DNA from: Malacoraja senta
Taxonomy: Eukaryota
Length of the DNA: 64,000 nucleotides
NCBI GenBank assembly: GCA_038087875.1
Contig: CM075979.1
Span: 45,756,001-45,820,000 of the forward strand
Direction: 5' to 3'
Position 1 is the first letter of the stretch. Each line of letters starts with the position of its first letter. The notes beneath the pieces are model-generated. The model ran no database searches. It worked only from the letters and a program-made list of their open reading frames with translations, and was not told where the DNA came from. Below, in pieces: positions 4,536-64,000 of the stretch. The position numbers were made by a program, and so were the translations under genes.

Positions 4536-7500
4536 AACATTGACTATGCTAGATAACGAAATGCAATCAAATGTTTTCATTCCCAATGTTATTATTTGTT
4601 TGAATCCATAAAGATGGAGTAATTAAATTGTGAACACGTGAAACATTAAAACCGTAGTGTTCGATTGTCAATGCTGCCGTTGACACGTTATTACAGAATT
4701 AATTTTAACGACAAATCAATGCTCTTAATATGGAGTATCAGTACTGTAGTTATTTAATGAGCAACATTCACAACTATACGTACGCATATATGTTACCATG
4801 GTCCAGGATTTATTGACACAGGTTGATCATACCCTGAATAATCCAACCACATTTTTGTTTGGAAGTGGAAAGAACTAATAGAAATTGCATTCATTGCAAT
4901 GTGTAAAAAGAGTTGAGATACTGTATTATAATTTTGCTGCATGTCATTGTGGTATATATCATATGGTTATGGTTATATGGTTATATGGTTATATCTTGAT
5001 TCATGAATATGTTTAGTTTGTAACTTTATTTGAAGCAGAAATAATATGTGAATGCTTCATTGAGGATAATTCCGACTGGTAACTACGCACTTCGTCCGAG
5101 CACATTATCGCACGCGTCATGCAAACCATCTTAAATGACCACCTAAACTGTCATTTGGCAACCTAAAAAGCTGCCACGGTTGCCCGGCTGGCAACAGGGA
5201 AAAAAAGTTAAGCGAGAGCCCTGTGTAAGCCAACTTTCAGTGACCGGTGTACAAGGACACCCAGGTCTCGCTGCACCTCCACCTTACCTAACCTAACCCC
5301 AGTGAGATAATAATCTGCCCCATTGTTTTTGCTGCCAAAGTGGATAACCTCACATTTATCTATATTATACTGCATCTGCCACGCATCTGCCCACTCACTC
5401 AACCTGTCCAGGTCACCCTGCAACCTCCTAACATCCTCTTCACAGTTCACACTGCCACCCAGCTTTGTGTCATCCGCAAACTTGCTAGTGTTGCTCCTAA
5501 TTCCCTCTTCCAAATCATTAATATATATGGTAACCAGTTGCGGGCCCAACACCGAGCCTTGCGGCACTCCACTCGCCACTGCCTGCCATTCTGAAAAGGA
5601 ACCGTTCACTCCTACTCTTTGCTTCCATTCTGCCAACCAATTTTCTATCCATGTCAACACCCTACCGCCATTCCATGTGCTCTAATTTTAGTCACCAGTC
5701 TCCCGTGCAGGACATTATCAAAGGCTTTCTGAAAGTCTAAATACATTACATCCACTGGCTACCCCTTCATCCATTTTACTTGTCACATCCTCTAAAAATT
5801 CCAGAAGATTAGTCAAGCATGATTTCCCTTTCATAAATCCATGTTGACTTGGACTAATCCTTTTACTGCTATCCAAATGCCCCATTATTACCTCTTTGAT
5901 AATTGACGCCAGCATCTTTCCCACCTCCGAAGTCAGGCTAACTGGTCTGTAATTCCCCGTTTTCTCTCTCGCTCCTTTCTTGAAAATTGGGATAACATTA
6001 GCTATCCTCCAATCCACAGGAACTGATCCTAAATCTATTGAACATTGGAAAATGATCGCCATTGCATCCACTATTTCTAGAGCCACCTCCCTGAGGACCC
6101 TGGGATGCAGACCATCAGGCCCAGGGGATTTAGCATCCTTCAGTCCCATTAGCCTACCCAATACAATTTCTCGCCTAATGAAAATTTATTTCAGTTCCTC
6201 TACCCCCTTTGATTCTCTGTCCTCCAGTACATCTGGGAGATTGTTTGTGTCTTCCTTAGTGAAGACAGATCCGAAAGACCTATTCAACTGTTCTGCCATT
6301 TCCTTGTTGCCCATAATAATTTCACCCGTGTCTGCCTTCAAGGGACCCACATTTGACTTTGCTACTCTTTTTCCCTTAACATTATCTAAAGAAGCTTTTA
6401 CTGTCTCTTTATATTCCTGGCCAGCTTCCCCTCGTACTTCATCTTTTCAGCCCGTATTGCCCGTTTTGTTTCCTTTGTTGTCCTATGAAAGTTACCCAAT
6501 CCTCTGGCTTCCGGCTACTCTTTGCTGTGTTATACATCTTTTCTTTTACTTTTATTCTATCCCTAACTTCTCTTGTCAGCCACGGTTGCCTCCTACTCCC
6601 CTTAGAATCTTTCTTCCTTTTTGAAATGAAATGATCCTGCGTCTTCCGGATTATGCCCAGAAATTCCTGCCATTGCTGTTCCACTGTCATTCCTGCTAGG
6701 ATCCCTTTCCAGTCTACCTTGGCCAGCTCCCCTCTCATGCCTTCATAGTCCCCTTTGTTCAACTGCATCACTGACACTTCCGATTTAATGTTCTCCTTCT
6801 CAAATTGCAGATTAAAACTAATCATATTATGATCACTACCTCCAAGCGGTTCCTTTACCTCGAGTTCTCTTATCATATCTGGTTCATTGGATAACACTAA
6901 ATCCAGAATTGCCTTTTCTCTGGTCGGCTCCATTACAATCTGCTCTAAGAATCCATCTCGGAGGCATTCTACAAATTCTCTTTCTTGGGGTCCTGAACCA
7001 ACCTGATTTTCCCAGTCTACCTGCATATTGAAATCCCCGATCACCACAGTGGCATTACCTTTGTTACATGCCAGTTTTAACTCCTGCTGCAACTTACACC
7101 CTACATCCGGGCTACTATTTGGGGCTCTAGATAACACCAATTAGTGTCTTCTTGCCTTTACAATTCCTCAATCCACAGTGACTCTACCTCGTCAGTTCCT
7201 ATGTCTTCCCTCGCAAGGGAATGAATTCCATCCCTCACCAGCAGAGCTACCCCCCCTCCTCTGTCCACCTGCCTGTCCTTTCTATAGGATGTATAACCCT
7301 GAATATTAAGTTCCCAGGCCCGATCCTCCTGCAGCCACGTCTCAGTAATCCCCACAATGTCATATCTACCAACCTCTAACTGAGCCTCAAGCTCATCTAC
7401 TTTACTTCTTATACTTCGCGCAATCATATACAATACTTTTAATTCCTTACGCATCTCACCTTTCACATCGATCCCTTTTACACTTGGCCATACGCTCCTA

Positions 7501-9722
7501 TCCCTTTGTGAGCTTCCTTTCCCGTTAATTCTGGGGTCATTCACCATCCCTTTACTCTCTTTCCCTTTAACTCCGTCCTCGACTATCCCATTTGACACCC
7601 CACCCCCCTTATTCAGTTTAAAACCACCCGTGTAGCAGTGGCAAACCTCCCTGCCAGAATGCTGGTCCCCCACCTGTTAAGATGCAATCCGTCCCTTTTG
7701 TACAGTTCCCCCTTACTCCAAAACAGATCCCAGTGATCTAAGAATCTAAATCCCTGCCCCCTGCACCAGTTCCTCAGCCACATATTCAGGTCCCGTATCT
7801 CCCTGTTCCTGTTCTCGCCAGCACGAGGAACTGGAAGCAAACCGGAGATAACAACCATGGAGGTCCTGTTTTTCAGCATTTTTCCGAGCTCTCTAATGTC
7901 ACGCTGCAGAATATTCATCCCCTTCTTTCCGACATCGTTTGTGCACTGCCACTTCCGGCTGTTCACCTTCGCCCTGGAGGATTTTCTGCACTCTGTCCGT
8001 GACATCCTGGATCCTGGCACCAGGAAGGCAGCACACCATCCTCGAATCCCGTCTGTTCCCGCAGAAACCCCTGAACGTACCTCTCACAATGGAGTCTCCA
8101 ACTACAATGGCGTTGCCTGACGTTGGCCTCTTTGGTTTTGGCTCAACAGCCCTTTTTGCTTCGCAAGCCAGTCCGCCGCTCAGTGTGATAACGTCTTCTG
8201 TCCCGACAGCTTCTAAGTGGGTGAACCTGTTCACAAGAGGTACAACACCCGGGGACGTTTGCATTCCATGTTTCCCTCCCTTTCTCACCGTCACCCACCT
8301 TCTCTCTTCCAGTACCTTAGGTGTAAACAATCTTACTGTAGGACTCGTCGAGGAACGACTCCGTTTCTCGGACGAACCTGAGGTCATCCACTTGCTTCTC
8401 CAGTTCCCCAACACGGTCCTTCAGGAGCTGTACCTGGATGCACTTCTCACATCTGTAGCAGCCAGAGGCACCAGCAGTGTCCTTGACCTCCCACATACTG
8501 CAAGCATCACACTGAATCAGCTTGCTTGACATCTCCTTCCTTCGTCTCTCCCTCTCCAACGTTTTGCGTGGCCTCCTCACCGAAGACCCTCGGGCCAATG
8601 ACTCGCACTTTTCTCACAGGGCACTTCCCTCACAAGGCTGGCGGCGACGGCTGTAGTGCGGGGTGATGGAGGGTCGGAGCGAATAACGGCCTTGCACAGC
8701 AGCAGCAGCGACGGTGGCTCCACTTCCTCCTGCACGCCGCCCGCCCTGATAGCGGCCACTGCGTGCCATTCCGCCAATGGCGATAGTCGCTTTCAAAACA
8801 AATCCTCCCGCACACCGACGCCGGGAGGAGGGAGGGAGGAGGAGACCCCCTTCCGCTGTCTGAAGCACCTGCACCACTCGGCCACGCACCTTCCTGTTGG
8901 CTGGCGGAGGAGAGGAGGCGGTGATGAGGAGATCCCAACAGCCTCTCCCTTTGGCGGCGGCACTTGGCGGTGGACAGGGATGGCCAAGACAGCGGGGCGA
9001 TGATGCCGGTGTTGTCCGAGGAGCGCTGACCTCCCTTCCTCCCCACCTCCTCTGCCCCTTCCCCCCTCTCTCTCTCTCTCTCTCTTCCATCCCCCTTATC
9101 CTGGGACCCCTCCTCTCCATCCCACACTGATCCCCATTCCCACCTCTATTCAGTCCTCACTGACACCCTCTGTGCTTCCCTCCCCATCTACAACCCCCTC
9201 CCCCACCACCATCTATTCATCCCGCACTGATTCACACCCCCCCCCCCCCCCCCGACCCTACTGCACTGGAAATGTTTTCAAAGCGAACATTGACTATGTT
9301 TGATAACGGAATGCATTCAAATGTGTTTTAATTCCCAATGTTATTATTTGTTTTAAACCTTAAAGATGCATTAATTAAATTGTGAACACGTGAAACATTA
9401 AAACCGCAGTTTTCGATTGTCACTGCTACCGTTGACACGTTAACAGAATTCATTTTAACGGCAAATCAATGCTCTTAATATGGAGTATCAGTGCTGTAGT
9501 TATTTAATGAGGAACATTCACAACTATATACGTTGGATTTATCCAGGTTTTACTTCTACAGTCGGTCATATACATCACAAATTTGGTCAGGAGATATTTC
9601 AGTTGAAAATTTTAACATTAATTCTGAAGTGGGAATGGTGGAAACAGCTTTTATCAATAATTTATTTTAAAAATCTGGTGCATACAAACTGGGTATCTTC
9701 ATTGCTGTTCACAACACATACA

Positions 9723-13677: not shown

Positions 13678-14016
13678 ATTCGTTGGATATGAACATTTTT
13701 GCCAGTCCGAAGAAAGTATTTTTGAACAAATCGGTTTTGTTGGAATGTAAATTTTCTGGGTTTAAAGCACCACTTGACCTTGACAAATGTAGGTGTGCGG
13801 TGGTTGTTCGGACCACACCAGGAAGAAATCTATGTTTTCAAACGGGAGTACCTACGCACAAGAACTCTAGCAAAGAAATAACCAACATTAAACTATCCGA
13901 AGGAGATGCTTCACTTCATCTTCATAATGTCCAATTGGAAAACGAAGGAATGTATACTTGCATTGTGTTTGTCACTCCTGAAAAGGCAGAAAAGAGTTCG
14001 GAACTGCGAGTTTTAG
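13678..14016 (+). CDS. NCR3LG1: Gene 1 exon: Ig V-set domain, B7-H6/NCR3LG1-like (apparent compensating +1/-1 frameshifts inside)
   Basis: tttag| acceptor at 13677, G|gtaaaa donor at 14017, phase 1/1. Reads (D)SLDMNIF..VLLECKFSG...GDASLHLHNVQLENEGMYTCIVFVTPEKA..LRVL. The GDASL..L..VQL...G.Y.C.V.VTP.KA pattern matches B7-H6 V domains. The C-strand VGVRW lies in the +1 frame. Confidence 0.8.
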
Positions 14017-19323: not shown

Positions 19324-19644
19324 TTCAGCCGAAGCTGCATTTACCCACACAACATGTTACCATTGAGACTGGTGCGGAGAAGCTGGTGATGTGTGATGCT
19401 ACAGGATTTTACCCTCAGGCACATAACATCTACTGGGAAAAAGTATCCAAGGATAAGACTGAGAACCTAAGGCACGATGTCTTCATCACACCTCTAGTTC
19501 TTAATCCGGATAAAACCTTTAATGTCTCCAGTGGAATGAGAATTGAACCAACTCCAGATGATAATGGCAATGTGTACAAGTGTGTCGTGGAGCACCAATC
19601 ATATAATGACCCTCTCTCGCTCGAGTTGAAACTCACAGTCAAAG
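19324..19644 (+). CDS. NCR3LG1: Gene 1 exon: extracellular Ig C1-set domain, B7-H6-like
   Basis: cag| and G|gtatgt splice sites, phase 1/1. VQPKLHL..VMCDATGFYPQAHNIYWEK..NPDKTFNVSSGMRI..DDNGNVYKCVVEHQSY..LTVK has both Cys and the Trp. Resembles human B7-H6 C domain (C..SGFYP.AINITWEK..DGTFNVTS..VYQCVVRH). Confidence 0.85.
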
Positions 19645-24144: not shown

Positions 24145-24258
24145 AACCTGTGGAATATTCGTCAACAGGGGCTATTGTTGGAGTTGGAGTTGCTGCAATT
24201 ATTCTATTGCCACTACTTGCCTTTGGACTCTATAAGTTCATCGTGAAATACAGACCAG
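24145..24258 (+). CDS. Gene 1 exon: stalk + transmembrane helix + basic stop-transfer
   Basis: ccag| and G|gtaata, phase 1/1. EPVEYSSTGAIVGVGVAAIILLPLLAFGLYKFIVKYRP: about 22 uncharged hydrophobic residues followed by K..K.R. Confidence 0.85.
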
Positions 24259-25123: not shown

Positions 25124-27015
25124 CTCTCAGACACCTCCTCCTACTTATCCCTGGACCATGACCCCACCTACGAGCACTAGGCCACTATCTCTAGCACCAT
25201 CACTGACTCCATCAACTCCCGCTCCCTGCCCCCCCCACCCCCGAGCCTCCAACCTCATCGTTCCCCAGCCCCGCACGGCCCGATTTTACCTTCTCCCCAA
25301 AATCCACAAACCTGACTGTCCTGGTAGACCCATTGTCTCTGCCTGTTCCTGCCCTACTGAACTTATTTCCACATACCTCGACTCCATCCTATCCCCCTGG
25401 TTAAATCCCTCCCTACCTATGTTCAAGACACCTCAGACATTCTCCGTCATCTCCGCGCATTCCATTCTCTTGGCCCCCATCTTCACCATGGACGTCCAGT
25501 CACTCTACACCTCCATCCCCCACCAGGAGGGTCTCAAAGCCCTCCGGTTCTTCCTCGACCGGAAAACCAACCAATCCCCGTCCACTGATACTCTCCTCCA
25601 CCTGGTGGAGCTGGTCCTTACCCTTAATAACTCTTCGTTTGACTCCTCCCATTTCCTCCAAATACAAGGCGTAGCTATGGGCACGCGCATGGGCCCCAGC
25701 TACGCCTGCCTCTTTGAAGAATACGTTGAACAATCCTTGTTCGAGATGTATCAGGGCCCCATCCCCGACCTCTACTTCCGCTACATCGACGACTGTTTTG
25801 ATGCTACCTCCTGCACCCACACACAACTCACTAACTTCATCAACTTTGCCACTAACTTCCATCCGGCACTCAAATACACCTGGACCATTTCCGACACTTC
25901 CCTACCATTTCTTAACCTCAATATCTCCATCGCAGGTGATAGACTTTTGACCAACATCCAGTATAAACCCACTGACTCCCATGGCTATCTGGACCACACT
26001 TCTTCCCACCCTGCTTCCTGTAAGGACTCCATCCCCTATTCCCAATTCCTCCATCTATGCCGCATCTGCTCCCAGGATGAGGTGTTCCACACCAGGGCAT
26101 CGGAAATGTCCTCATTCTTCAGGGAACGGGGGTTCCCCTCCCCTACTATAGATGAGGCTCTCACCAGGGTCTCTTCAATACCCCGTAACACTGCTCTCTC
26201 TCCCCATCCCCCCCACTCGCAACAGGGGCAGAGTCCCCTAGTCCTCACCTTCCACCCCACTATCAATCAATCAATCAGTTTTATTCGTCACTTGCACATA
26301 AAGTGCTAGTGAAATGAATATTGCCAGCAGCATTATTACAATGAAAAAGAATACACAAAAATACAATAACAATTTAACACAAACATCCACCACAGCATTC
26401 ATCACTGGTGGAAGGCACAAAATTTGGCCAGTCCTCCTTCATTTCCCCCCGTGGTCGGGACCTCAACCCTCCGCAGCCGCCGCTGCGGGCATCCAGATGT
26501 GTAGACAAGGTAAAAGTCCAGGTAAGTCCTGAATCGGTGCTTCCCTTCAGGTTGGTGTAGGCCGCAGGCCGGCAGTCGAAGATTTAAAGTTCCCGCCGCG
26601 CTGCAGCCAGAAGCACCGCAGACCGCAGGGCCGGCGGTCGAAGCTCCCCTCCCTAAAGCCGTCACATACAACAAATAGCCCTCCGTCATTTTCGCCACCT
26701 CGAACGTGACCCCACCACTCGCCACATCTTCCCATCTCCCCCTCTGCTTTCCGCAAAGACCGCTCCCTCCATAACTCCTTGGTCAATTCTTCCCTTCCTA
26801 CCCGCACCACCCCCCACCCCGGGCACTTTCCCTTCTCCTCCCTTTCTCAGCTCTCCATCAGCCCTTGGGCTCCTCCTCTTCCTTTCTTCTTCCCGCCCCC
26901 TCGCCCCCCATCCTGCAACAGTCTGAAGAAGGGTTTCGGTCCGAAATGTTGCGTGTTTCCTTCGCTCCATAGATGCTGCCACACCCGCTGAGTTTCTCCA
27001 GCACTTTTGTCTACC
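25124..27015 (+). mobile_element. Penelope-like element RT fragment, interrupted at about 26270-26655 by an unrelated short repeat
   Basis: ORF 25158-26309: FYLLPKIHK..PGRPIVS, MDVQSLYTSIPH, YFRYIDD; terminal hammerhead motif at about 26923. Confidence 0.85.
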
Positions 27016-27060: not shown

Positions 27061-28312
27061 TAGAATTTTTCGAGGATGTAACTAGTAGAGTGGATAAGGG
27101 AGAACCAGTGGATGTGTTGTATCGACGTTCAGAAGGCTTTCGACAAGGTCCCACATAAGAGATTAGTATACAAACTTAAACCACACGGTATTGGGGGTTC
27201 ACTATTGATGTGGACAGAGAACTGGCTGGCAGACAGGAAGCAAAGAGTAGGAGTAAACGGGTCCTTTTCAGAATGGCAGGCAGTGACTAGTGGGGTACCG
27301 CAAGGCTCAGTGCTGGGACCCCAGCTATTTACAATATATATTAATGATTTGGACGAGGGAATTGAATGCAACATCTCCAGGTTTGCGGATGACACGAAGC
27401 TGGGGGGCAGTGTTAGCTGTGAGGAGGATGCTAGGAGGCTGCAAGGTGACTTGGATAGGCTGGGTGAGTGGGCAAATGCATGGCAGATGCAGTATAATGT
27501 GGATAAATGTGAGGTTATCCACTTTGGTGGCAAAAACAGGAACGCAGACTATTATCTAAATGGTGGCCGATTAGGAAAAGGGGAGATGCAACGAGACCTG
27601 GGTGTCATGGTACACCAGTCATTGAAAGTAGGCATGCAGGTGCAGCAGGCAGTGAAGAAAGCGAATGGTATGTTAGCATTCATAGCAAAAAGATTTGAGT
27701 ATAGGAGCAGGGAGGTTCTACTGCAGTTGTACAGGGTCTTGGTGAGACCACACCTGGAGTATTGCGTACAGTTTTGGTCTCCTAATCTAAGGAAAGACAT
27801 TCTTGCCATAGAGGGAGTACAGAGAAGGTTCACCAGACTGATTCCTGGGATGGCAGGACTTTCATATGAAGAAAGACTGGATAGACTCGGCTTGTACTCG
27901 CTAGAATTTAGAAGATTGAGGGGGGATCTTATAGAAACTTACAAAATTCTTAAGGGGTTGGACAGGCTAGATGCAGGAAGATTGTTCCCGATGTTGGGGA
28001 AGTCCAGAACAAGGGGTCACAGTTTAAGGATAAGGGGGAAGTCTTTTAGGACCGAGGTGAGAAAAAAAAAATTCACACAGAGAGTGGTGAATCTCTGGAA
28101 TCCTCTGCCACAGAAGGTATTTGAGGACAGTTCATTGGCTATATTTAAGAGGGAGTTAGATGTGGCCCTTGTGGCTAAAGGGATCAGGGAGTATGGAGAG
28201 AAGGCAGGCACGGGATACTGAGTTGGATGATCAGCCATGATCATATTTAATGGTGGTGCAGGCTCGAAGGGCCGAATGGCCTACTCCTGCACCTATTTTC
28301 TATGTTTCTATG
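27061..28312 (+). mobile_element. CR1 RT/3' end
   Basis: ORF 27112-28221 with SGVPQGSVLGP and FADDTKL; (TTTCTATG) tail. Confidence 0.9.
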
Positions 28313-28463
28313 TAAAATGCTGGAATTACTCAGCGGGCCAGGCAGCATCTCTGGCGAAAAGGAATAGCTGACGTTTTGGGTCGAGACCCTTCTTCAGACC
28401 CTTGTATCTTCAGAAAGAACATTTAGATTGCCAAGTTTTAAATACCTGCTTTGTTTTGACTAG

Positions 28464-28892
28464 TTCGTCCAGAGATCACTGGCCCCAATGGACATCAAAC
28501 CATGAAACATCATGAAAAAGAAATGGCCACTTGGACGGTTGGTCCATTCCGACCTCGTGAAATTATAATTCACTTATACCTAAAGAGGAAGGGGGATGAT
28601 GTGAGAAGTACAATTTTAGATTGGGACAGCAGAAAATCTACTGAAAACAGAAATGGAATGATCAACGGAGAGGGTCGCAATGAGTCGAGGATTCTGATGA
28701 ATTCAAATTGGGTCGATGCATCTTTTACACCATTGGATCCCGAATATAACAATGCAGATGGGATTGTGACGATCAATGTGAAAATATATCCAGATGTTAA
28801 CAAGGATGCAGGGGCTGAATTAACCATTGAAGTTCAACATACATCACTGAAACAGCCGATATCAAAGACATTGATACTGGATGTTATAGGAG
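28464..28892 (+). CDS. Gene 1 exon: first post-TM C1-set-like domain, cysteine-free, with long insertion
   Basis: tag| and G|gtaaag, phase 1/1, 143 open codons. VRPEITGP..ATWTVGPFRPREIII.. and ..DAGAELTIEVQHTSLKQPISKTL.LDV align to the C1 motifs xCxxxGFYPxxI and YxCxVxHxSL. Confidence 0.75.
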
Positions 28893-30880
28893 GTAAAGTA
28901 TAAATGTTTTCTTTAATCATTAATGTCTATATATTGTGATTTCAGTCCGAATGTCTTCAGAGTCATAGAGTGATACAGCGTAGAAACAGGCCCTTCAGCC
29001 CAACTTGCCCAAGCTGACCAACATGTCAGTCAGTCTGGACACTTCATCCCATCTGCCTGCGTTTGGTCCATATCCCTCTAAACATGTTCTATCCATGTAC
29101 CCGTCTAAATATTTCTTAAAAATTGTGATAGTACCTACCTCAACTATCTCGTCTGGCAGCTTGTTCCACACACTCACCACCTTTGTATGAAAAGGTTACC
29201 CCTCAGATTCTGATAAAATCTTTCCACCCTCCTCATCTGAAATCTATGTCCTCTGGTCCTCGATTCACCTACTCTGGGCAAAAGACTGTGGATCTCCCCG
29301 ATCTATTCCTCTGATGATCTTCTACACTCTATTTGATCACTCCTCATCCTCCTGCGCTCCAAGGAATAGAGTCCTAGCCTGCTCAACCTCTCCCTGTAGC
29401 TCAGGCCTTCAGGTCCTGGCAACATCCTCGTAAATCTTCTCTGCACCCTTTCCAGCTTGACAACATCTTTCTTGTAACAAGGTGTCCAAAATCTGCTGAA
29501 CATGATGCCAAGATAAACTAATCTCTGCTGCTTGCATGCACTCCATGTCCCTCCATTCCCTGCATATTCATGTGCCTATCTAAAAGCTTCTTAAACACCA
29601 CCATTTTATCTGCCTCCACCACCACCACCCCTGGCAGCCTGTTCCACGCTGTGTTTAAAAATGAAACGCCCCTCACCTCTCCTTTAAACTTTGCCACTCT
29701 AATCTTAAAGCTATGCCCTCCAGTCTTAGACATTTCTACCCTGGGAAAAATATTCTGACTGTCTACCTTTCATCATGTACGTCTCGATGGGCCGAAGGGC
29801 CTTTCCACGCTGTACCTCTAAACTAAACTAAACTAAATCAGGACCATTCTCTGGTTGGTAATAGATAGATAGATTAGATAGCCCTTTATTGTCATTCAGA
29901 CCGAAGTCTGAACGAAATTGCAACAGTCATACATAAAACAACAATAAACACATATTAACATCCACCACAGTGAGTCCACCCAACATCTCCTCACTGTGAT
30001 GGAGGCAAAAGTCTTAGGTCTGCAGTCTCTTCCCTCCTCTTCTCCCTCTGCGCTGAGGCGATACCCCCCGGGCGATGTTTCCCGCGGCTCAAACACCGCA
30101 GCCCGAGGTGGTCGAAGCTGCCGCCCACCAGTCCTGCAGACGCAGCCGCTGGCCCGCGGCCGAACCCCGGACTCAGGCCACCACCGCCAGAACACCGTCC
30201 CAGCCACCCTCACGTGAGTACCGTGCCATCTTCAGTCTCGGGCCGCGCTGCCCCGACATGGGCGTCGCTTCTCCCTCGGGCCGGGCCGCCCCGACTTGGG
30301 CGCTCACAGGAGCACTGTTCCAGCCCTGAGCCGGACCACCCTCACGGGAGCGAGCTCAGGGCGAGTCCTGACGGGCTCTGCCTCCGGAGCCTCGAGGTCG
30401 CCACCTCCATTAGGCCTCAGCGCAGACGGAGGCAGAGAAGGGGAATACGACAAAAAGTCGCATTCCCCCGCAGGGAGAGACTGCAAACCCCGTTACAACC
30501 CCCACCCCCCCAAAACACAAACTAAAAACCAAAAACTAGACTAACCAAAACAAAATAAACAACACAAAAAACACAAACAAACAGGACTGCCGATGAGCCG
30601 CTGCAGCCAGTGCCGCGCCGCCACAATAGGATGGTTCAATTGCCTGATGACAACTAATACATTAGTAATGGTAATACATTTGCAATGGGGGACTAGAACT
30701 GCACGCAATACTCCAACTATGGCCTAACCAAAGTCTGCAGAGCTGCATCGTGACCTTAACACTTTTAGGAGATTATCTCATCAGTCGACTCAAAGTCACG
30801 GAAAATTCACACAGTAATGTAATATGTTCTTGCTTTTGTAAATTTCAACTAGTTGATTTGTTTGTTTTCTTTTCTCAAAG

Positions 30881-31258
30881 TGCCACCCAAGGTTTTAAAC
30901 ATCTTCAAACCCTCTTGCATCATTCACAATGAACCTGCATCTTTGTTCTGTTCAATCACTGGGTTTAAACCGAGACCTTTATGTATCACGTGGCAACGAA
31001 AGAGAAAGAACATGGAGGCAGAAGAAATAGTTCGAATGGAGGAGGACAACAGGACAATTATTCCCGGTGGTGACGGGGAGATGTCCACATATAAACATTA
31101 CATCATTGAGATGAAGCACGATGATGAATCCTACAGCATCACTAGTGTACTAGAGATAGTGCCTGATATACAGCAAGATCAAGGCTCACTTTACACCTGT
31201 AAAGTACATCACAACGGCACCAATGACCAGGAGAGAGAAATCAAGTTAATGATTGCAG
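30881..31258 (+). CDS. Gene 1 exon: second post-TM C1-set domain
   Basis: caaag| and G|gtatat, phase 1/1. VPPKV..LFCSITGFKPRPLCITW..DDESYSITSVLEI..DQGSLYTCKVHH. Confidence 0.85.
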
Positions 31259-32160: not shown

Positions 32161-32472
32161 CCATTCCAAAAGTGGGCCCAATAAAGTGCAACGCAGAGAA
32201 GATAATTGGTGGTGTACCCATGACGATAAGCTGTCCAATAAATGCGTTTTACCCCAGAGACATCACAGTGAAATGGCTGAAAAATGATGAAGAGACGTTG
32301 CAGAATTTCAAAGTTGCTGAGCCAGTAATTGGTCAGGATGGCCTCTATCATGTGGCAAGTGATGTGGAGATAGTCCCCACCAGGGCTGAGGCAACAGCCA
32401 AATATACATGCCGAGTGTCCCATCTGAGCCTGACTGAGCCATTACACACTGATTGGTTTGCAGGTGAAATGG
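32161..32472 (+). CDS. Gene 1 exon: third post-TM C1-set domain
   Basis: tttcag| acceptor; donor G|gtacgt at 32473 (alternative G|gtgaaa at 32464), phase 1/1. AIPKVGPI..ISCPINAFYPRDITVKW..DGLYHVAS..KYTCRVSHLSL. Confidence 0.85.
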
Positions 32473-36222: not shown

Positions 36223-36555
36223 CTTCATTGCCAAAGCTTACAGCAATTGAGGTTGATCCACTTTGCCCCGAAATGGGAAAGGAAGTAACACTCTCCTGCA
36301 AAGCTTACGGATTCTATCCTGAAGGAAATCAAATATCCTGGTTCAAAGAATTTGATAAAATCAAAGATCCATTCAAAGCAGGAATTACTCTGGGAGCAAG
36401 TGAACTGGACACAGAGAATGGTTGCTATTCACGTTCATCCAAATGGAAATACACACCAGCTGCTGATGACCATGGAAGAAAATTTAAGATGAAAATCTTT
36501 CATTCTGCAACTTCAAGCTACCCCAACACTTCCAGTTACACTTTAAAATTAAAAG
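36223..36555 (+). CDS. Gene 1 exon: fourth post-TM C1-set domain (F-strand Cys replaced by Met)
   Basis: Long pyrimidine tract + ccag|, G|gtgaat, phase 1/1. ASLPKL..VTLSCKAYGFYPEGNQISW..ENGCYSRSS..DDHGRKFKMKIFHSA. Confidence 0.85.
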
Positions 36556-38132: not shown

Positions 38133-38444
38133 GGATTCCATTCGTCGACGACATTAAGTATGAGCCACCAGTGGCTGCGTACAGTTCAGAACATCATCTC
38201 GTCTGCAAAGTTGATAACTTTTATCCAAAACAAATTGGAACAAGCTGGTTATGTAAAGGGAAACCAATATCCGAAGGAGTCGAAGATGCAGGAGCGGTGG
38301 AGGATAAGAATGGATGTTTTCAGATGGAGTCCTCCTTGCGTATTAAGCCAACTGCTGTACAATTTGATGGAATGATTTCCTTTCAAGTGACGCATTCAAG
38401 GTTAAATACTCCAATAACAAAACAAGTGTCTTTAAACCTTTCAG
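38133..38444 (+). CDS. Gene 1 exon: fifth post-TM C1-set domain (F-strand Cys replaced by Phe)
   Basis: caacag| and G|gtatgt, phase 1/1. GIPFVDDI..LVCKVDNFYPKQIGTSW..KNGCFQMESSLRI..ISFQVTHSRL..PITKQV. Confidence 0.85.
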
Positions 38445-39257: not shown

Positions 39258-39554
39258 TTTTGCCTCCTACCTTATCTCCTATCACAAGTGATCCAGCTCC
39301 ACGGCTACTGAAAGTGAAGCAAGCTGTTAATCTCTGTGTCTCCTTGACATCCTATGTTCCTGCTCAAATCCAAGTCAAGTGGCTTCTAGATGGGAAGCTT
39401 TGCCAAGCAAGGTGTGAATGCCCTCCTGAGATCACAGATGATGGTTTGTTTTCATCTAGTTTGAGCATAATGTTGGAGGCAGGAATAAATGATCACAGAA
39501 GTTGCATCAAATGTCCGGTGCTTCATGTGAAGGAATTCCAATTACTCTCTGAAG
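39258..39554 (+). CDS. Gene 1 exon: sixth post-TM, divergent Cys-rich C1-like domain
   Basis: catcag| and G|gtgaat, phase 1/1. VLPPTLSPI..NLCVSLTSYVPAQIQVKW..DDGLFSSSLSI..IKCPVLH. Confidence 0.7.
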
Positions 39555-39669: not shown

Positions 39670-42600
39670 TATCTCCAGTTTGCTTCCAGTTCCTCGTGTT
39701 GGCGAAAGCAGGAACAGGGAGATACGGTACTTGTGCACTGGGGAACTGGTGCAGGGGGCAGGGATTTAGATTCTTAAATCACTGGGATCTGTTTTGGAGT
39801 AAGGGGGAACTGTACAAAAGGGACGGATTGCATCTTAACAGGTGAGGGACCAGCATTCTGGCAGGCAGGATTGCCACTGCTACACGGGTGGTTTTAAACT
39901 GAATAAGAGGGGTGGGGTGTCAAATGGGATAGTCGAGGACGGAGTTAAAGGGAAAGAGAGTAAAGGGATGGTTAATGACCTCAGAATTAATGGGAAAGGA
40001 AGCTCACAAAGGGATAGGAGAGTATGGCCAAGTGTAATAGGGATCGATGTGAAAGGTGAGATGCGTAAGGAATTAAAAGTATTGTATATGAATGCGCGAA
40101 GTATAAGAAGTAAAGTACATGAGCTTGAGGCTCAGTTAGAGGTTGGTAGATATGACATTGTGGGGATTACTGAGACGTGGCTGCAGGAGGATCGGGCCTG
40201 GGAACTTAATATTCAGGGTTATACATCCTATAGAAAGGACAGGCAGGTGGACAGAGGAGGGGGGGTAGCTCTGCTGGTGAGGGATGGAATTCAGTCCCTT
40301 GCGAGTGAAGACATAGGGACTGACGAGGTAGAGTCACTGTGGATTGAGTTGAGGAATTGTAAAGGCAAGAAGACACTAATTGGTGTTATCTACAGACCCC
40401 CAAATAGTAGCCCGGATGTAGGGTGTAAGTTGCAGCAGGAGTTAAAACTGGCATGTAACGAAGGTAATGCCACTGTGGTGATGGGGGATTTCAATATGCA
40501 GGTAGACTGGGAAAATCAGGTTGGTTCAGGATCCCAAGAAAGAGAGTTTGTAGAATGCCTCCAAGATGGATTCTTAGAGCAGCTTGTAATGGAGCCGACC
40601 AGAGAAAAGACAATTCTGGATTTAGTGTTGTCCAATGAACCAGATATGATAAGAGAACTCGAGGTAAAGGAACCGCTTGGAGGTAGTGATCATAATATGA
40701 TTAGTTTTAATCTGCAATTTGAGAAGGAGAAAGTTAAATCGGAAGTGTTAGTGATGCAGTTGAACAAAGGGGACTATGAAGGCATGAGAGGGGAGCTGGC
40801 CAAGGTAGACTGGAAAGGGATCCTAGCAGGAATGACAGTGGAACAGCAATGGCAGGAATTTCTGGGCATAATCCGGAAGACGCAGGATCATTTCATTCCA
40901 AAAAGGAAGAAAGATTCTAAGGGGAGTAGGAGGCAACCGTGGCTGACAAGAGAAGTTAGGGATAGAATAAAACTAAAAGAAAAGATGCATAACACAGCAA
41001 AGAGTAGCCGGAAGCCAGAGGATTGGGAAACTTTCATAGGACAGCAGAAGGAAACAAAACGGGCAATATGGGCTGTAAAGATGAAGTACGAGGGGAAGCT
41101 GGCCAGGAATATAAAGAAGGACAGTAAAAGCTTCTTTAAATATGTTAAGGGAAAAAGAGTAGCAAAGTCAAATGTGGGTCCCTTGAAGGCAGACACGGGT
41201 GAAATTATTATGGGCAACAAGGAAATGGCAGAAGAGTTGAATAGGTACTTCGGATTTGTCTTCACTAAGGAAAACACAAGCAATCTCCCAGATGTACTGG
41301 AGGACAGAGGATCTAAGGGTGTAGAGGAACTGAAAGACATTTTCATTAGGCGAGAAATAGTATTGGGTAGGCTAATGGGACTGAAGGATGATAAATCCCC
41401 TGGGCCTGATGGTCTGCATCCCAGGGTCCTCAGGGAGGTGGCTCTAGAAATAGTGGACGCATTGGTGATCATTTTCCAATGTTCAATAGATTCAGGATCA
41501 GTTCCTGTGGATTGGAGGATAGCTAATGTTATCCCACTTTTCAAGAAAGGAGCGAGAGAGAAAACGGGGAATTACAGACCAGTTAGCCTGACTTTGGTGG
41601 TGGGAAATGCTGGAGTCAATTATTAAAGAGGTAATAATGGGGCATTTGGATAGCAGAAAAAGGATTAGTCAACATGGATTTATGAAAGGGAAATCATGCT
41701 TGCCTAATCTTCTGGAATTTTTTGAGGATGTGACAAGTAAAATGGATGAAGGGGTGCCAGTGTATGTAGTGTATCTAGACTTTCAGAAGGCCTTTGATAA
41801 GGTCCTGCACGGGAGACTGGTGACTAAAATTAGAGCACATGGTATTGGGGGTAGGTTGTTGACATGGATAGAAAATTGGTTGGCAGCAAAGAGTAGGAGT
41901 GAACGGGTCCTTTACAGAATGGCAGGCAGTGGCGAGTGGAGTGCCGCAAGGCTCGGTGTTGGGGCCGCGCAACTGTTTACCATATATATTAATGATTTGG
42001 AAGAGGGAATTAGGAGCAACACTAGCAAGTTTGCGGATTACACAAAGCTGGGTGGCAGTGTGAACTGTGAAGAGGATGTTGGGAGGTTGCAGGGTGACCT
42101 GGACAGGTTGAGTGAGTGGGCAGATGCGTGGCAGATGCAGTATAATATAGATAAATGTGAGGTTATCCACTTTGGCAGCAAAAACAAGGGGGCAGATTAT
42201 AATGGGGTTAGGTTAGGTAAGGGGGAGGTGCAGCGAGACCTGGGCGTCCTTGTACACTGGTCACTGAAAGCTGGCTTACAGGTACAGCAGGCAGTGAAGA
42301 AAGCTAATGGAATGTTGGCCTTCATAACAAGAGGATTTCAGTATAGGAGTAAAGAGGTTCTTCTGCAGTTGTATAGGGCTCTGATGAGACCACATCTGGA
42401 GTATTGTGTACAGTTTTGGTCTCCTAATTTGAGGAAGGACATCCTTGTGATTGAGGCAGTGCAGCGTAGGTTCACGAGATTGATCCCTGGAATGGCGGGA
42501 CTGTCATATTGAAAAGACTAGACTTGTATTCACTGGAGTTTAGAAGGATGAACATAGAAACATATAAAATTATAAAAGGACTGGACAAGCTTTTTTTTTT

Positions 42601-43475: not shown

Positions 43476-45289
43476 TGACACACTAGGGGGCAATTCCCAG
43501 AGGGCCAATTAACTAACAAACCCACAAATGTACAAGATTCGGACACATACGATTCTTTTATTTATAAATATTGTTTATGACACTTGATAAATATTCTTGT
43601 TTTGTTGCTTTTGTTTTTTGTATGCTGTTTCACACTTGCTTTTTATATTTTTAATCTGTTCGAATAATAAAAAATAAAAAATAAATAAATCTTGAGAGGA
43701 ATAGATCGGGTTGTCGCATAGCGTCTCTTGCCCCGAGTTGGGGAATCGAGGACCAGAGGCCAATGGTTTAAGGTGAGGGGGATTTAATAGGAACTCGAGG
43801 GGTAACTTTCTCACACAAACGTTGCAATCAGAGGTAGTTGAGGCAGGGACTATTGCAACGTATAAGAAACATTTAAACAGGTATTTGGATAGGATAGGTT
43901 TAGAGGGGTATGGGGTAAATGCAGGCAGGTGGGTCTAGTGTAGATGCGGCATGCTGGTCGGAGTGGACATGTTGGGACAAAGGGCCTGTTTCCACACTGT
44001 ATGACTACGACTCTTTGTCTTTGGGATCTAGGAAGAAACCCGCACGTTCACATGGGGGAACGTGCAAACGCCACACAGACAGCACCCGTGGTCAGGATTG
44101 AACCTGGGTCTCTGGCGCTGCGCCACTGTGCCGTCCCTTCTCACTTCAAACTTTCCATTAGATTTATTTGATTGTCTCTTTCACAACAAAGTTTCACGTT
44201 GAACAAATTAGTTTTATTTTTTACTGGTGTTGTGAATAGATGATTTTGGATGTTCATTTGTTTAAAATCTGCTTGGGTGAGACACTTAGATCACTGAAGC
44301 AGGCCCTTCGGCCCAACTTGCCATTGTCAACCAAGGTGCCCAATCTGAACTAGTCCCACCTGCCCGCGATTGGCCCACCTTCTATCAATCTAGACTATTA
44401 CTAAAACTCTCATCTTGACCACTTCCTGTCTGCGTTGTATTAAATTTGCGCAAAAACGATCCCCCATAGCGCTACGTTTTTTCGCCACCTTATCATTCTC
44501 CTTTGCTGCGTCATATAAGTTTTGTCCCGATCGGTGAAATATTAGAAAACTTATTGGTCTGTTATTCGCCAGGACGGCGACGCCCCTTCCGGCACCCGCT
44601 GTCAATCACCGGCCGCGACAATAAAGCTGAAGGAGCGGAGTGAGCAAAGTGTGAACGGGGTCTTTGTTCTGCGAGTGGGGGCCCACACCCCCCCTCCCCT
44701 ACAGCCCGCCCCTCCCCTGCACCCCTCCTCCCCCCCTCCCCTACACCCCCCTCCCCCCTACCACACACGCCCATCACACACATACCCCCTGCTCCCACCA
44801 TCCCCCCTACCCCCACCTTCCCCCCTCACCCCACCCCCATAAGGTTGGAGGAGGTGCAGGGGAACCTCTGCCTGAGCTGGAAAGACTGCTTGGGTCCTTG
44901 GATGGGGTCGAGGGGGGAGGTAAAGCGACATGTGTAGCATTTCCTGCGGTTGCAAGGGAAAGTACCAGAGGAAGGGGGTGATTTGGGTAGGAAGGGACGA
45001 ATTGAACAGGGAATTGGTTCAGGTAGTCTTTGCTTTCGCCCTCCTTCCCCTCCCCTTCACAGCTCTCCCACAGCCTACTCTCTCCGCCTCTTCCTTTCTT
45101 TTTCCCACCCACCACCCCCCCACATGTGTGAAGAAGGGTCTCGACCCGAAACGTCCCCTATTCCTTCGCTCCATAGATGCTGCCTCACCCGCTGAGTTTC
45201 TCCAGCATTTTTGTCTACCTTTGATTTTTCCAGCATCTGCAGTTCCTTCTTAAACATCAGGTTTAATTAAGCTCTTTTTTATTCTGCAG

Positions 45290-45334
45290 ATAATGGCAAA
45301 ATGGAAAATGATGTCAATGAAGACGTCGATGAAG
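45290..45334 (+). CDS. Gene 1 candidate 45-nt acidic mini-exon
   Basis: T-rich tract + ctgcag|, G|gtaaaa, phase 1/1. DNGKMENDVNEDVDE lies in non-repeat sequence between repeats. Confidence 0.55.
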
Positions 45335-46119
45335 GTAAAAGTCTTCATTTCCAATAGTTACTGTATTTTGAATGTTTGCTTCAAGTAGAAATTTAGATCA
45401 TTACACATATTCCACATGTTTTCAAAACACAAAGTGCTGGAGGAACTCGGTGGCTCAGGCTGCATCTGGAAGGAATGTTTAGTTTAGAGATAGAGCACAT
45501 AAACAGGCCCATCGGCCAACCGAGTCCGCACCGACCACCGATCACCACACACTAACAATATCCAATACTCCAGGGACAATTTATAATTTTTACCGATGCC
45601 AATTAAACTCCAAATCTGCACGTCTTTGGTGTGTGGGAGGTATCTGGAGAAACCCCACGTGGTCACAGGGGGAATGTCCGAACTCCACACAGACAGCACC
45701 CGTGGTCAGGATGGAGCCCGGGTCTCTGGTGCTGTGAGGCAGCAACTCTACCGCTGCGCCCGTTATCTCTTCAAACTTTACACTAGATTTATTTGATTAT
45801 TTCTTTCACAACAAAGTTTCATGTTGAATAAAGTAGTTATATTTGTTACTGATGTTGACAATAGATGATTTTGGATGTTCAGTTGTTTAAAATCTCCTTG
45901 GGTGAGACACTTAGTCATAGTCATAGATCACAGGTAAAGGCCCTTCGGCCCAACTTGCCCTTGTCAACCAAGATGCTCCATCTAAACTAGTCCCACCTGC
46001 CCACGATTGGCCCATATCCCTCTAAACCTATCCTATCCATGTTCCCGCTCAAGTGTTTAATACTCTGACTTTGTAAGTGGCAATTTGATTTGACTAATGT
46101 CAGGTTTAATGAAAGGGAG

Positions 46120-46534: not shown

Positions 46535-46734
46535 NNNNNNNNNNNNNNNNNNNNNNNNNNNNNNNNNNNNNNNNNNNNNNNNNNNNNNNNNNNNNNNNNN
46601 NNNNNNNNNNNNNNNNNNNNNNNNNNNNNNNNNNNNNNNNNNNNNNNNNNNNNNNNNNNNNNNNNNNNNNNNNNNNNNNNNNNNNNNNNNNNNNNNNNNN
46701 NNNNNNNNNNNNNNNNNNNNNNNNNNNNNNNNNN
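46535..46734. other. Assembly gap (200 N)
   Basis: Run of N. Confidence 0.99.
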
Positions 46735-53588: not shown

Positions 53589-53817
53589 NNNNNNNNNNNN
53601 NNNNNNNNNNNNNNNNNNNNNNNNNNNNNNNNNNNNNNNNNNNNNNNNNNNNNNNNNNNNNNNNNNNNNNNNNNNNNNNNNNNNNNNNNNNNNNNNNNNN
53701 NNNNNNNNNNNNNNNNNNNNNNNNNNNNNNNNNNNNNNNNNNNNNNNNNNNNNNNNNNNNNNNNNNNNNNNNNNNNNNNNNNNNNNNNNNNNNNNNNNNN
53801 NNNNNNNNNNNNNNNNN
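53589..53817. other. Assembly gap (229 N)
   Basis: Run of N. Confidence 0.99.
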
Positions 53818-60795: not shown

Positions 60796-61830
60796 GTGAC
60801 AAGTTGCGTTGATACTTAATTTTCTCTGCACTCTTTACAGTTTATTGCCATAAATCTGAAAAAGGTGCAGAGAGGATTCAGCAGGATTTTGGCAGGACCC
60901 GAGGGCCTGAGCTCTGGGGAGAGGTTGGACAGACTGGGACTATTCCTTGGAGGACAGGAGGCTGAGGGGTGATCTTATAGAGGTGTATACGGTCATGAGG
61001 GGAATAGATAAATATACACTCTTGCTCTGAGTAGGGGAATCAAGAACCACATAGGTTTAAGGTGAGGGGAGAAAGTTTTAATTGGAACCTGAGGGGCAAT
61101 GTTTATCAACAAATGAATTAAAAATCTGGGGTAGATAAGAATGCTGGAGAAACTCAGCGGATGAGGCAGCATCTATGGAGCGAAGGAATAGGTGACATTT
61201 TGGGTCGAGACCCTTCTTCAGATTATTGGGATTATTTTGCTAAAGTGAATACGAATTCATGATACATTTTCAGGTGCTGTGTCCGTAGTTTGTACGTTCT
61301 CCCTGTGACTGCGTGTGTTTTTCCCGGGTGCTCCAGTTTCCTCCCACACTCCAAAGACTTGCAGTTTCTTAGGTTAATTGGTTTCTGTAAACTTATAAAT
61401 TGTCCCAAGTGTGTAGGATCATACGAACATAAGTGATAGGAGTAGAATTAGGCCATTTGGCCCATCAAGTCTACTCCATCAATCAGTCATGACTGATCTA
61501 TCTCTCCCTCCTAATCCGATTCTCCTGCCTTCTCCCCATAACCTCTGACACCGGTCCTAATCAAAAATCTATCTATCTCTACCTTAACTATATCCACTGA
61601 CTGCCTCCACAGCCTTCCGTGACAAAGAATCCCACAGATTTACCAGGATAGTGCTAGTGTATCGCTGGTCGGCACGCACTCGATGGGCCAAAGGGGCTGT
61701 TTCCACTCTATCTCTGAACTAAATTTTCACACTGCATCACCGTGCTGGCTAAATTCTCTAAAAATGTGTTTCCTACTTTTTGTTTGTCGATTTGTTTGTA
61801 GACTGGCAACTTGTTTCTCTATGATTGCAG

Positions 61831-62190
61831 AAGGAGGAGATCTGGTTGTGTCAATGAATTCAAGAATAGTGGAAGTCTTTGTGAATAAAGATGTCCTTCT
61901 TGAATGCCGAGTGTCTGGTTACAAGACCAGTGAGATCAACCTTCAAAATGTGGGTGTCATCTGGTACCTTAAAAGGTTGGGGGCCCCCACCAGGGAGGAA
62001 GTGTATAAATTCAGCGGAGGAAAGCATACACCTTACAGAAAAGATGCTGCGATTTTTGATGATGAGTTAAAGAAGGGAATTGCCTCTCTCTTCCTCCCAC
62101 TTGTTCAATTTAATGAAGAAGGAGATTATACCTGCGTAGTCTTCATCAGCCCGGACCAGGGAAGTGGCAAATCTACAATGATTGTTTCAG
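61831..62190 (+). CDS. NCR3LG1: Gene 2 exon 2: Ig V-set domain, B7-H6/NCR3LG1-like
   Basis: tgcag| and G|gtaaaa, phase 1/1, open. EGGDLVVSM..VLLECRVSG..NVGVIWY..EEVYKFSGGKHTPYRKDA.I..ELKKGIASLFLP.VQFNEEGDYTCVVFISPDQGSG. Confidence 0.85.
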
Positions 62191-62218
62191 GTAAAAACAA
62201 TTAACAAATATTTCAGGC

Positions 62219-62503: not shown

Positions 62504-63515
62504 AGCCTGAAGTCTAATGAATTTGTCCTCTGTTTATATCTTTGACATTTTCACCCATATAACCATATAACCATATAACAATTACAGCACGGAAACAGGC
62601 CATCTCGACCCTTCTAGTCCGTGCCGAACACGTATTCTCCCCGAATAAAATCCCGAATCTCACCCAGGGATAAAACGTTCTGACAATCTACTCTTTGAAA
62701 CGGAACACAAAAAATGATTCACTCAATCGTTATATATGTAATTGCAAGCTGCAATAGCGATACACCTGTAAACTAAAAATAAAAATACCCAACACATCTC
62801 CACCATGTGTCTACGCAACCTCCGACATTCCAGAGAAAACAATGCAACTCTGTCCAACTTCTCCTTGTAGTTAATACCACCTAATACATCAACTTTCTAC
62901 CCTGAAAAGGACATAACCATGGACTGTTTGCCCTCCTCCCATCAGGGAGGCGGTACAGGAGCCTCAGGTCTCGTACCAGTAGGATGAGGAACAGCTTCTA
63001 CAATTATACCGTCGCATTGCTGAACTCGGAGTCCCGCCGATAGATTCCTCCGGTCCCTCCGTCCCCATTGTTAATTATTCTGTATTTTTGATTATTCTGT
63101 ATCCTCTTTTAAAAAAAAATTCTATATTGCACTACTACTACGGACTGACGCAAAACTGCATTTCGTTGTACCCATACTCAGTATTTGTGCAATGACATTA
63201 AAGTTGAATTGAATTGAATTGAATTGAATTGAATAAAATGCTGGAGTAACCCAAGTGTGTAAGATAGAATTAATGTACAGGGTGATTGATGGTCAGCACG
63301 GACTCGATGAGCCGAAGGGCCTATTTCCACGCTGTATCTCGAACCTAAACTAAACGTTTCAATTTGTGCACTCATTACTAGATTTGGATTAAAAATATAT
63401 TTTTAAACGTCCACTAATATCAAATGACTATGGGACATGCTGGCTCGTGTGGGCAGATTGGGCTGAAGGGCCTGTTTCCACACTGTATGATTAACATTGA
63501 TTATTATCTTCACAG

Positions 63516-63837
63516 CTAAACCACAAATGACTTTATCCGCAACTGCTATCACAATTGAGAATGGGACGGAGAAATCGGTGAAATGTGACAGTACTGCGTT
63601 TTACCCCTTGGAGATTCAGATAAGTTGGCTCAAGAAATCAAAGAGTGGAGAACAGACGATCCTGGGACCACATTTGCACAGGATCTCCTGTTAGAAATAC
63701 AGATGGAACCTACAATGTGTCGAGCCATATGAGGCTACGTCCAACACTCCAGGACGATGGTAACACTTACGTCTGCTTAGTGAGACATAGATCACTTGGT
63801 AAGCACGCAGAGTTGACAACCCATCTGACTGTCAGAG
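63516..63837 (+). CDS. NCR3LG1: Gene 2 exon 3: Ig C1-set domain with an apparent +1 frameshift at GGG 63664-63666
   Basis: cacag| and G|gtaagt. AKPQMTL..VKCDSTAFYPLEIQISW in one frame; DHICTGSPVRNTDGTYNVSSHMRL..DDGNTYVCLVRHRSL in the next. Exon length 322 nt is not a multiple of 3. Confidence 0.8.
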
Positions 63838-64000
63838 GTAAGTTTAATTTTAGTTATAGAGGTAATGTGGAAACAGGCCCTTCAGCCCAACGAATCCACA
63901 CCGACCATCGATGGGCCAAATATGGGCAGGTTAGTCGGGCGTAGATGGGGTATCTTGGACAGTATGGACAAGTTGGGTTGAAGGGCATTTGTCTGTGATA

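Follow-up and report, generated by a model that had tools for sequence, protein, structure and literature searches.

A putative disulfide-free, C1-derived immunoglobulin domain at the head of the post-transmembrane array of a B7-H6-like gene in Malacoraja senta

In a stretch of 64,000 nucleotides from Malacoraja senta (GCA_038087875.1, contig CM075979.1, positions 45,756,001 to 45,820,000 of the forward strand; hereafter the window), the exon at 28464-28892 on the + strand encodes the first immunoglobulin (Ig) domain behind the transmembrane (TM) segment of a B7-H6 (NCR3LG1)-like gene, which is composed of a V exon, a C1 exon, a TM exon and then six Ig exons, D1 to D6. The domain in question, D1, contains no Cys at all, and alignments of its homologues point to a loss of the canonical cysteine pair that is both ancient and conserved. 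Taken as a whole, the observations are in our view probably best explained by D1 being a disulfide-free domain of C1 descent that opens an array of Ig domains behind the membrane anchor of a B7-H6-like protein.

The D1 exon is flanked by splice sites on both sides (acceptor AG, 28462-28463; donor GT, 28893-28894), the span between them being exactly one exon, and it is in phase 1 at both ends, as is usual for exons of the Ig superfamily. Its reading frame runs from 28466 and comprises 142 whole codons and two split codons, with neither a stop nor a Cys; a frame read literally from 28464 runs into many stops and was rejected. The original prediction, which had been made from this DNA alone, had described an open, cysteine-free frame in which Trp stands at the position of the B-strand Cys and Ile at that of the F-strand Cys, with the C-strand Trp lost and the FxP and VxHxSL motifs retained, and all of these details were borne out when the canonical columns were assigned by alignment to D2 and to 19 D1 domains of the family. 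The B-strand position is taken by Trp23 (28532-28534, + strand, within ATWTVGPFRP), at a position where 9 of 20 D1 homologues have Cys and all four batoids have Trp. The C-strand position is taken by Leu37 (28574-28576, + strand), where Trp occurs only in Pristiophorus and in one Heterodontus gene and the others have L, V, I, F or A, and the F-strand position by Ile121 (28826-28828, + strand, within ELTIEVQHTSL), where I, V, L or F is found in 19 of 20 domains and Cys only in Pristiophorus (P0032). The stretches FRP (residues 28-30) and VQHTSL (residues 123-128) correspond to the F-x-P and V-x-H-x-S/L signatures of the C1-set, and both F28 and V123 are conserved to at least 90% in the D1 family alignment. 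Together with R41, P109 and L138, they make up the five nearly invariant residues of the family, all of which the window D1 retains.

Structure prediction assigns an Ig fold to this domain, the AF2 model of the window D1 (36 sequences) being an Ig sandwich with a mean pLDDT of 86 and a pTM of 0.78, for which Foldseek returned an Ig match probability of 1.0. Profile comparisons further indicate that D1 is of C1-set ancestry and a sister of D2, as hhalign aligned the two over their full length (99.5%, E=5e-23), with values of 97.8% for the ectodomain C1, 97.4% for D3, 97-98% for D4 and 84.8% for the V domain of the family. Searched against the PDB, the D1 profile matched C1-type constant domains only (best 1.3e-6), namely those of IgA, IgM, MHC class II beta2, beta2-microglobulin and TCR C-beta. 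Pfam gave no match to the window D1 at E<=10, so that the gathering score of the C1-set (PF07654) is not reached; among the homologous D1 domains, 18 of 36 matched the Pfam C1-set, the best with 8e-9. A phmmer search with the window D1 against 1.84 billion representative proteins returned 49 homologues (E<=1e-10 for 15), and these homologues, together with the exclusive match of the profile to C1-type constant domains, indicate that the zero-Cys exon is more than the product of chance.

Among the matches listed, the top structural neighbours of the D1 model were V- and I-set domains (Z 10-12, about 110 aligned residues), as seen both in re-ranked Foldseek matches and in a Foldseek-independent search, and no recognisable C1-type constant domain was present among the best 50 neighbours listed. 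The predicted structure has a C' strand of seven residues and extra short strands. A control model of D2 (AF2 pLDDT 91) had V-type neighbours as D1 did, even though D2 passes the Pfam C1-set and keeps both of its Cys, and because D2 gives the same V-type neighbours, the enlarged C'-to-D region seems to be common to D1 and D2 and older than the loss of Cys. The original description of D1 as a C1 fold is thus right with regard to ancestry and loose with regard to topology: the Ig sandwich and the C1 descent were recovered, and the predicted shape seems to depart from that of a classic seven-strand C1 domain.

It had also been suggested that an insertion of about 40 residues follows the C strand and may serve as an interaction or phosphorylation loop. 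A long polar stretch, beginning DSRKSTENRNG, is indeed present, and D1 with its 142 residues is 42 longer than D3 (100 residues). The variable loop itself spans residues 54-85 (28625-28720, + strand) between the conserved W53 and S86-F87, and is thus about 32 residues long and predicted to be only partly disordered, the part with an AF2 pLDDT <50 being residues 62-75 (28649-28690, + strand), flanked in the model by a short helix and short strands. Across 36 homologues the length of the loop ranges from 13 to 44 residues, with a median of about 30, and the frequency of the top residue is 0.26 as compared to 0.48 in the remaining domain. The loop is more polar than the rest of the domain, its content of Ser and Thr is 0.14 versus 0.15 elsewhere, and Tyr is not enriched either. 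The proposed function found no backing in these 36 homologues, in which neither conservation nor an enrichment of Ser/Thr marks a docking site or phosphosite. Judged by its sequence, it looks like a tolerated variable loop, which may have been put to lineage-specific use.

The nine exons from V to D6 lie on the + strand, are all in phase 1-1 and could be joined in silico without a stop. The ectodomain is encoded by a V exon at 13678-14016 (Pfam V-set, with its middle in a shifted frame in this copy) and a C1 exon at 19324-19644 (Pfam C1-set), of which the best solved relatives are the human B7-H6 structures 3PV6, 4ZSO and 6YJP (E=1e-16). The TM exon at 24145-24258, bounded by AG/GT, encodes a hydrophobic core followed by basic residues, and its splice to D1 is in phase and reads ...KYRP-V-RPEITGP. 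Beyond D1 lie D2 (30881-31258), which is its nearest relative and has a canonical Cys pair and a Pfam C1-set match, and D3 (32161-32463), a canonical C1 domain (Pfam C1-set, E=7e-16). These are followed by three more exons that match the Pfam C1-set: D4 (36223-36555), with the B-strand Cys retained and Met at the F-strand position; D5 (38133-38444), with the B-strand Cys retained, Phe at the F-strand position and an extra Cys in the motif NGC[FY]; and D6 (39258-39554), with Val at the B-strand position and the F-strand Cys retained. At 45286-45339 on the + strand, the acidic repeats of the Amblyraja radiata protein gave a weak match in tblastn (E=0.03), which probably marks part of the acidic linker found behind the Ig array in orthologues. 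The placement of D1 directly after the TM segment, which had been part of the original prediction, is confirmed by the in-phase splice and by orthologous proteins that carry the TM-to-D1 junction. An Ig heavy-chain constant cluster was also considered for the locus and was rejected on inspection, as the TM segment is unlike that of Ig heavy chains and precedes the domains.

In most of the matching proteins, which have 600-1500 residues, D1 covers about residues 250-450 and comes right behind a single hydrophobic segment. The homologues come from skates and rays (Amblyraja, Narcine, Hemitrygon and Mobula), sharks (Cetorhinus, Scyliorhinus, Heterodontus, Pristiophorus and Stegostoma), the chimaera Callorhinchus, the coelacanth Latimeria, the bichirs Erpetoichthys and Polypterus and many frogs, and the order of TM followed by D1 is common to all of these groups; no amniote or teleost was found among the D1 matches whose species were looked up. 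The number of Ig domains behind the TM segment ranges from 2 to 9 in the orthologues. Most of the proteins are named 'uncharacterized' in the databases, with the exception of Bombina (RefSeq) and Rhinophrynus, which are called NCR3LG1, and of one Polypterus entry called 'NR3L1', the NCR3LG1 naming of frog members in RefSeq being automatic. When the V-C1 part of the Callorhinchus protein was compared with solved structures, human B7-H6 came first (E=5e-25), ahead of CD276 and TAPBPR. These similarities to solved structures place the V and C1 ectodomain nearest to B7-H6 among known proteins and make the gene a putative member of that family. The window D1 is 86-88% identical to residues 522-667 of A. 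radiata XP_032894416. This closest database protein (P0001) has a duplicated ectodomain, V-C1-V-C1-TM, in a gene model of 115 kb, in which two tandem genes may have been merged.

The cysteine states of the individual domains were read from alignments with collinear orthologues, in the columns of the B-strand Cys, the C-strand Trp and the F-strand Cys. All three residues are present in 22 of 22 sequences in the ectodomain C1, in 17 of 17 in D2 and in all collinear orthologues in D3 (both Cys in 14 of 14). In D1, the B-strand position holds Cys in 9 of 20 domains, Trp in 6 of 20 including all four batoids, and otherwise F, Y, L or V, with the C-strand Trp in 2 and the F-strand Cys in 1 of the 20; Pristiophorus alone has the full Cys-Trp-Cys trio. 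D4 retains the B-strand Cys and the Trp and has Met, Val or Ile at the F-strand position, D5 likewise retains the B-strand Cys and the Trp and has Phe at the F-strand position (8/8) along with the invariant extra Cys, and D6 has Val or Ile at the B-strand position and retains both the Trp and the F-strand Cys. The canonical pair is therefore absent from D1, D4, D5 and D6, that is from four of six post-TM domains, in essentially all orthologues. As these states are identical in cartilaginous and bony fishes, they were fixed before the two lineages split, an event estimated at about 450 million years ago, which gives the age of the family.

The loss of the pair in D1, which the original prediction had described for a single sequence, is accordingly shared by the orthologues, with the F-strand Cys absent in 19 of 20 and the C-strand Trp absent in 18 of 20 D1 domains. 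The complete lack of Cys did not hold up as a trait of the family: the number of Cys in D1 varies from 0 to 7, the Amblyraja orthologue has two, and a count of zero is peculiar to the window copy. Cys counts are very variable and often odd in the post-TM domains as a whole, as compared to exactly 2 in 23 of 26 V domains. Since the unpaired core Cys of D4 to D6 are as invariant as the pairs of D2 and D3, conservation of Cys alone cannot demonstrate a disulfide. The second invariant Cys of D5 (NGC[FY], 8/8) is located at the start of strand E and could form a non-canonical bridge. The net charge per domain revealed nothing special for D1.

The copy in the window may be damaged, either because it is a pseudogene or through assembly indels. 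Its V exon is open, but the frame is shifted in the middle of that exon (about 13785-13880), where the counterpart of the conserved C-strand segment NVGVxW...EEIYVF known from the orthologues lies in another frame, and identity to the orthologue is 52% for the V exon as compared to 82-91% for the other exons, D1 being at 88%. In addition, an exon for the C-terminal 'IIWY..YPFDE' domain of orthologues was not found in the window at E<=10, where three N gaps are present. Both defects, together with the difference between the two Cys of D1 in the A. radiata orthologue and none in the window D1, would be expected if the features specific to this copy, such as the lack of any Cys, were due to drift in a dying gene whose D1 exon merely happens to be still open. 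We consider this explanation unlikely, as nine exons are all open and splice in frame, D1 has diverged no further than the other exons, the five nearly invariant residues of D1 are all in place, and the defects could stem from gaps and indel errors in the assembly. Moreover, decay of this copy cannot account for the missing canonical pair, an absence seen throughout the family.

With regard to the side of the membrane on which D1 resides, several features of the family argue for the cytosol. A hydropathy scan found one TM segment, between the ectodomain C1 and D1, in most full-length members and no later hydrophobic segment. Counted over the family, K/R and D/E number 53 and 19 in the 12 residues that follow the TM segment and 32 and 42 in the 12 that precede it. 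The family thus displays the sequence features of a type I protein with a cytosolic tail, namely a signal peptide, a single TM segment and a positive-inside charge distribution; the leader exon was not located in the window. N-x-S/T sequons are positionally conserved in none of the post-TM domains as opposed to 15 of 22 sequences in the ectodomain C1, the density of post-TM sequons being close to compositional expectation and on its own not decisive. In the Callorhinchus UniProt entry V9K7L7, which we take to be derived from cDNA, the TM segment and the domains from D1 onward are joined in one chain. Based on these features, together with the missing canonical pair in four of the six post-TM domains and the unsteady number of their Cys, we lean towards D1 being cytosolic in a real and major isoform. 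There, the array would have to fold under reducing conditions, which fits the disulfide-poor D1 and D4 to D6.

In Hemitrygon, Heterodontus, Bombina and Rana temporaria, RefSeq lists pairs of isoforms whose only difference is the TM cassette, which suggests a second form of the protein; one Scyliorhinus model also has no TM segment. In the isoform pairs (P0054, P0072, P0049/P0088 and P0017/P0075, from a ray, a shark and two frogs) the cassette is 31-38 residues long. Because all exons are in phase 1, skipping of the TM exon keeps the frame and would lead to secretion of the whole array, and in our reading membrane and secreted forms are both made. The original prediction had attributed the loss of the disulfide to a move into the reducing cytosol. 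The position of D1 directly behind the TM segment and the conserved loss of its pair agree with that proposal, and its causal step is plausible only, given the intact Cys-Trp-Cys of D2 and D3 and the TM-skipped isoforms.

The same evidence can be read as an array that works only outside the cell, with the secreted, TM-skipped V-C1-D1...Dn molecule being the productive one, the long TM-containing mRNAs being minor or non-productive, and the loss of disulfides having no relation to redox conditions, for example if a Trp or an aliphatic core compensates for the disulfide of D1. The exact skipping of the TM cassette that the models predict in four species, representing two vertebrate classes, along with the Scyliorhinus model, is in line with such a reading, and so are an N-[RT]-T sequon in D2 of elasmobranchs (6/17 sequences) and the fact that C1-set domains are known only from oxidising compartments. 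In addition, no orthologue has lost either Cys or the Trp in D2 or D3, as would be expected of domains that need their disulfide, and this counts against a cytosolic array. However, the TM segment is present in most of the predicted isoforms and in V9K7L7, and its exon, positive-inside flanks included, has been conserved between chimaera and frogs. Four of the six post-TM domains have no canonical pair, which would be very unusual for secreted C1 domains; no sequon is conserved family-wide, and the number of Cys varies erratically, with many odd counts. On balance, we regard an exclusively extracellular array as improbable.

Finally, that D1 to D6 form a separate downstream gene with a leader exon of its own, the TM exon closing an upstream V-C1 gene, is highly improbable: the shared phase 1-1 of all exons means that matching phases alone do not prove joining, and the repeat-filled interval of 4.2 kb between the TM exon and D1 could hide a short leader exon, but proteins from more than 10 species including V9K7L7 join TM to D1 at the same point, and no model in the family begins with D1 behind its own signal peptide.

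Here we propose that the protein is built as a signal peptide, V, C1, TM, D1 to D6, an acidic linker and a last domain, with D1 next to the membrane. D1 would have arisen from a C1-set domain as the sister of D2, the enlarged C'-to-D region giving both of them a strand complement that resembles V- and I-set domains. Before cartilaginous and bony fishes split, D1 would have lost its F-strand Cys and its C-strand Trp, and its B-strand position would since be occupied by Cys or by a bulky aromatic residue, Trp in batoids. With its canonical positions lost, D1 is therefore expected to fold without the canonical disulfide. In the TM isoform, cleavage of the signal peptide, the single TM segment and the basic residues behind it would place D1 in the cytosol a few residues below the membrane, where it might link the anchor to the remainder of a disulfide-independent Ig array acting as an intracellular scaffold or sensor, in analogy to the B30.2 domain behind the ectodomains of butyrophilins; in TM-skipped isoforms the same array would be secreted. 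More tentatively, we speculate that the ancestral B7-H6 might have been two-sided, with an NKp30-type ligand on the outside and, in the cytosol, a string of C1-derived Ig domains free of disulfides that reports or scaffolds, with splicing also releasing a soluble molecule. If so, adaptation to the cytosol would have gone furthest in D1, which would have given up Cys and Trp along with the disulfide, and we know of no earlier case in which C1-set Ig domains function there.

The tail of human B7-H6 is short, carries signalling motifs and is of gag-like origin, and we know of no report of Ig domains behind its TM segment. Human B7-H6 (3PV6, 4ZSO and 6YJP) shares with the window gene a type I layout with a V and C1 ectodomain and one TM segment, and differs from the fish and frog family in the 2 to 9 Ig domains that the latter carries behind it. 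Butyrophilins (BTN/BTNL) resemble the family in having a B7-related V-C ectodomain, one TM segment and then a folded domain; functionally they offer the best parallel for a folded domain placed behind an ectodomain of B7 type, a likeness that is one of analogy only. Their intracellular domain is B30.2/PRY-SPRY and not Ig, and it can report the state of the cell interior to lymphocytes outside; no sequence relation between D1 and this domain was seen. Titin and MyBP-C offer a precedent of another kind, in that their cytosolic domains are, as predicted for D1, Ig sandwiches and fold without a disulfide in the cytosol, and the structural neighbours found for the D1 model included titin Z1Z2 and MyBP-C. 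The sequences of these muscle domains are of the I-set, however, and no membrane ectodomain is attached to them, whereas the D1 profile matches the C1-set. The non-rearranging UrIg and UrIg2 genes of sharks and skates (PMC12227049; PDB 9DMX) combine one V domain with many C1-type domains; in UrIg2 all C domains precede the TM segment, and each of the solved domains has the canonical disulfide and Trp (PMC12227049). UrIg2 appeared among the PDB matches of the window ectodomain C1. An identity with UrIg/UrIg2 was nevertheless rejected, their TM segment being C-terminal and their solved domains keeping the disulfide; in the window gene the TM segment comes after the first C1 domain, and most of the later domains are without the pair.

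The C1-set domains of antibody constant regions, MHC, beta2-microglobulin and tapasin are a hallmark of adaptive immunity in jawed vertebrates and are generally seen as domains of the extracellular space or the lumen that need their disulfide; we know of none in the cytosol. The present family is conserved and puts C1-derived domains behind a membrane anchor, each with its own fixed pattern of kept and lost Cys. If these domains are cytosolic, they would illustrate the adaptation of this fold to a reducing environment, a matter of relevance to the design of intrabodies, and would suggest that B7-H6 once possessed a module for inside-out sensing or scaffolding, as butyrophilins do. If instead the secreted form is the working one, the family would represent a large soluble relative of B7-H6 with unusually disulfide-poor C1 domains. 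In the literature, we found no description of Ig domains behind the TM segment of B7-H6; earlier studies on the evolution of B7H6 may already cover the tail. Our analysis adds the ancient loss of Cys in D1, the fixed Cys states of the individual domains, the sisterhood of D1 and D2 with their V-like expansion, the lack of conservation of the insertion and the existence of TM-skipping isoform models in four species.

The remainder of the window contains a second member of the B7-H6-like family, a paralogue with V and C1 exons at 61683-62204 and 63515-63869 that continues past the window end. Introns and the region upstream are filled with retroelement reverse-transcriptase ORFs (25158-26309, 27112-28221 and 5208-8414), and a LINE-like ORF (39842-42512) as well as N gaps (46535-46734 and 53589-53817) are found in the interval 39600-61000.
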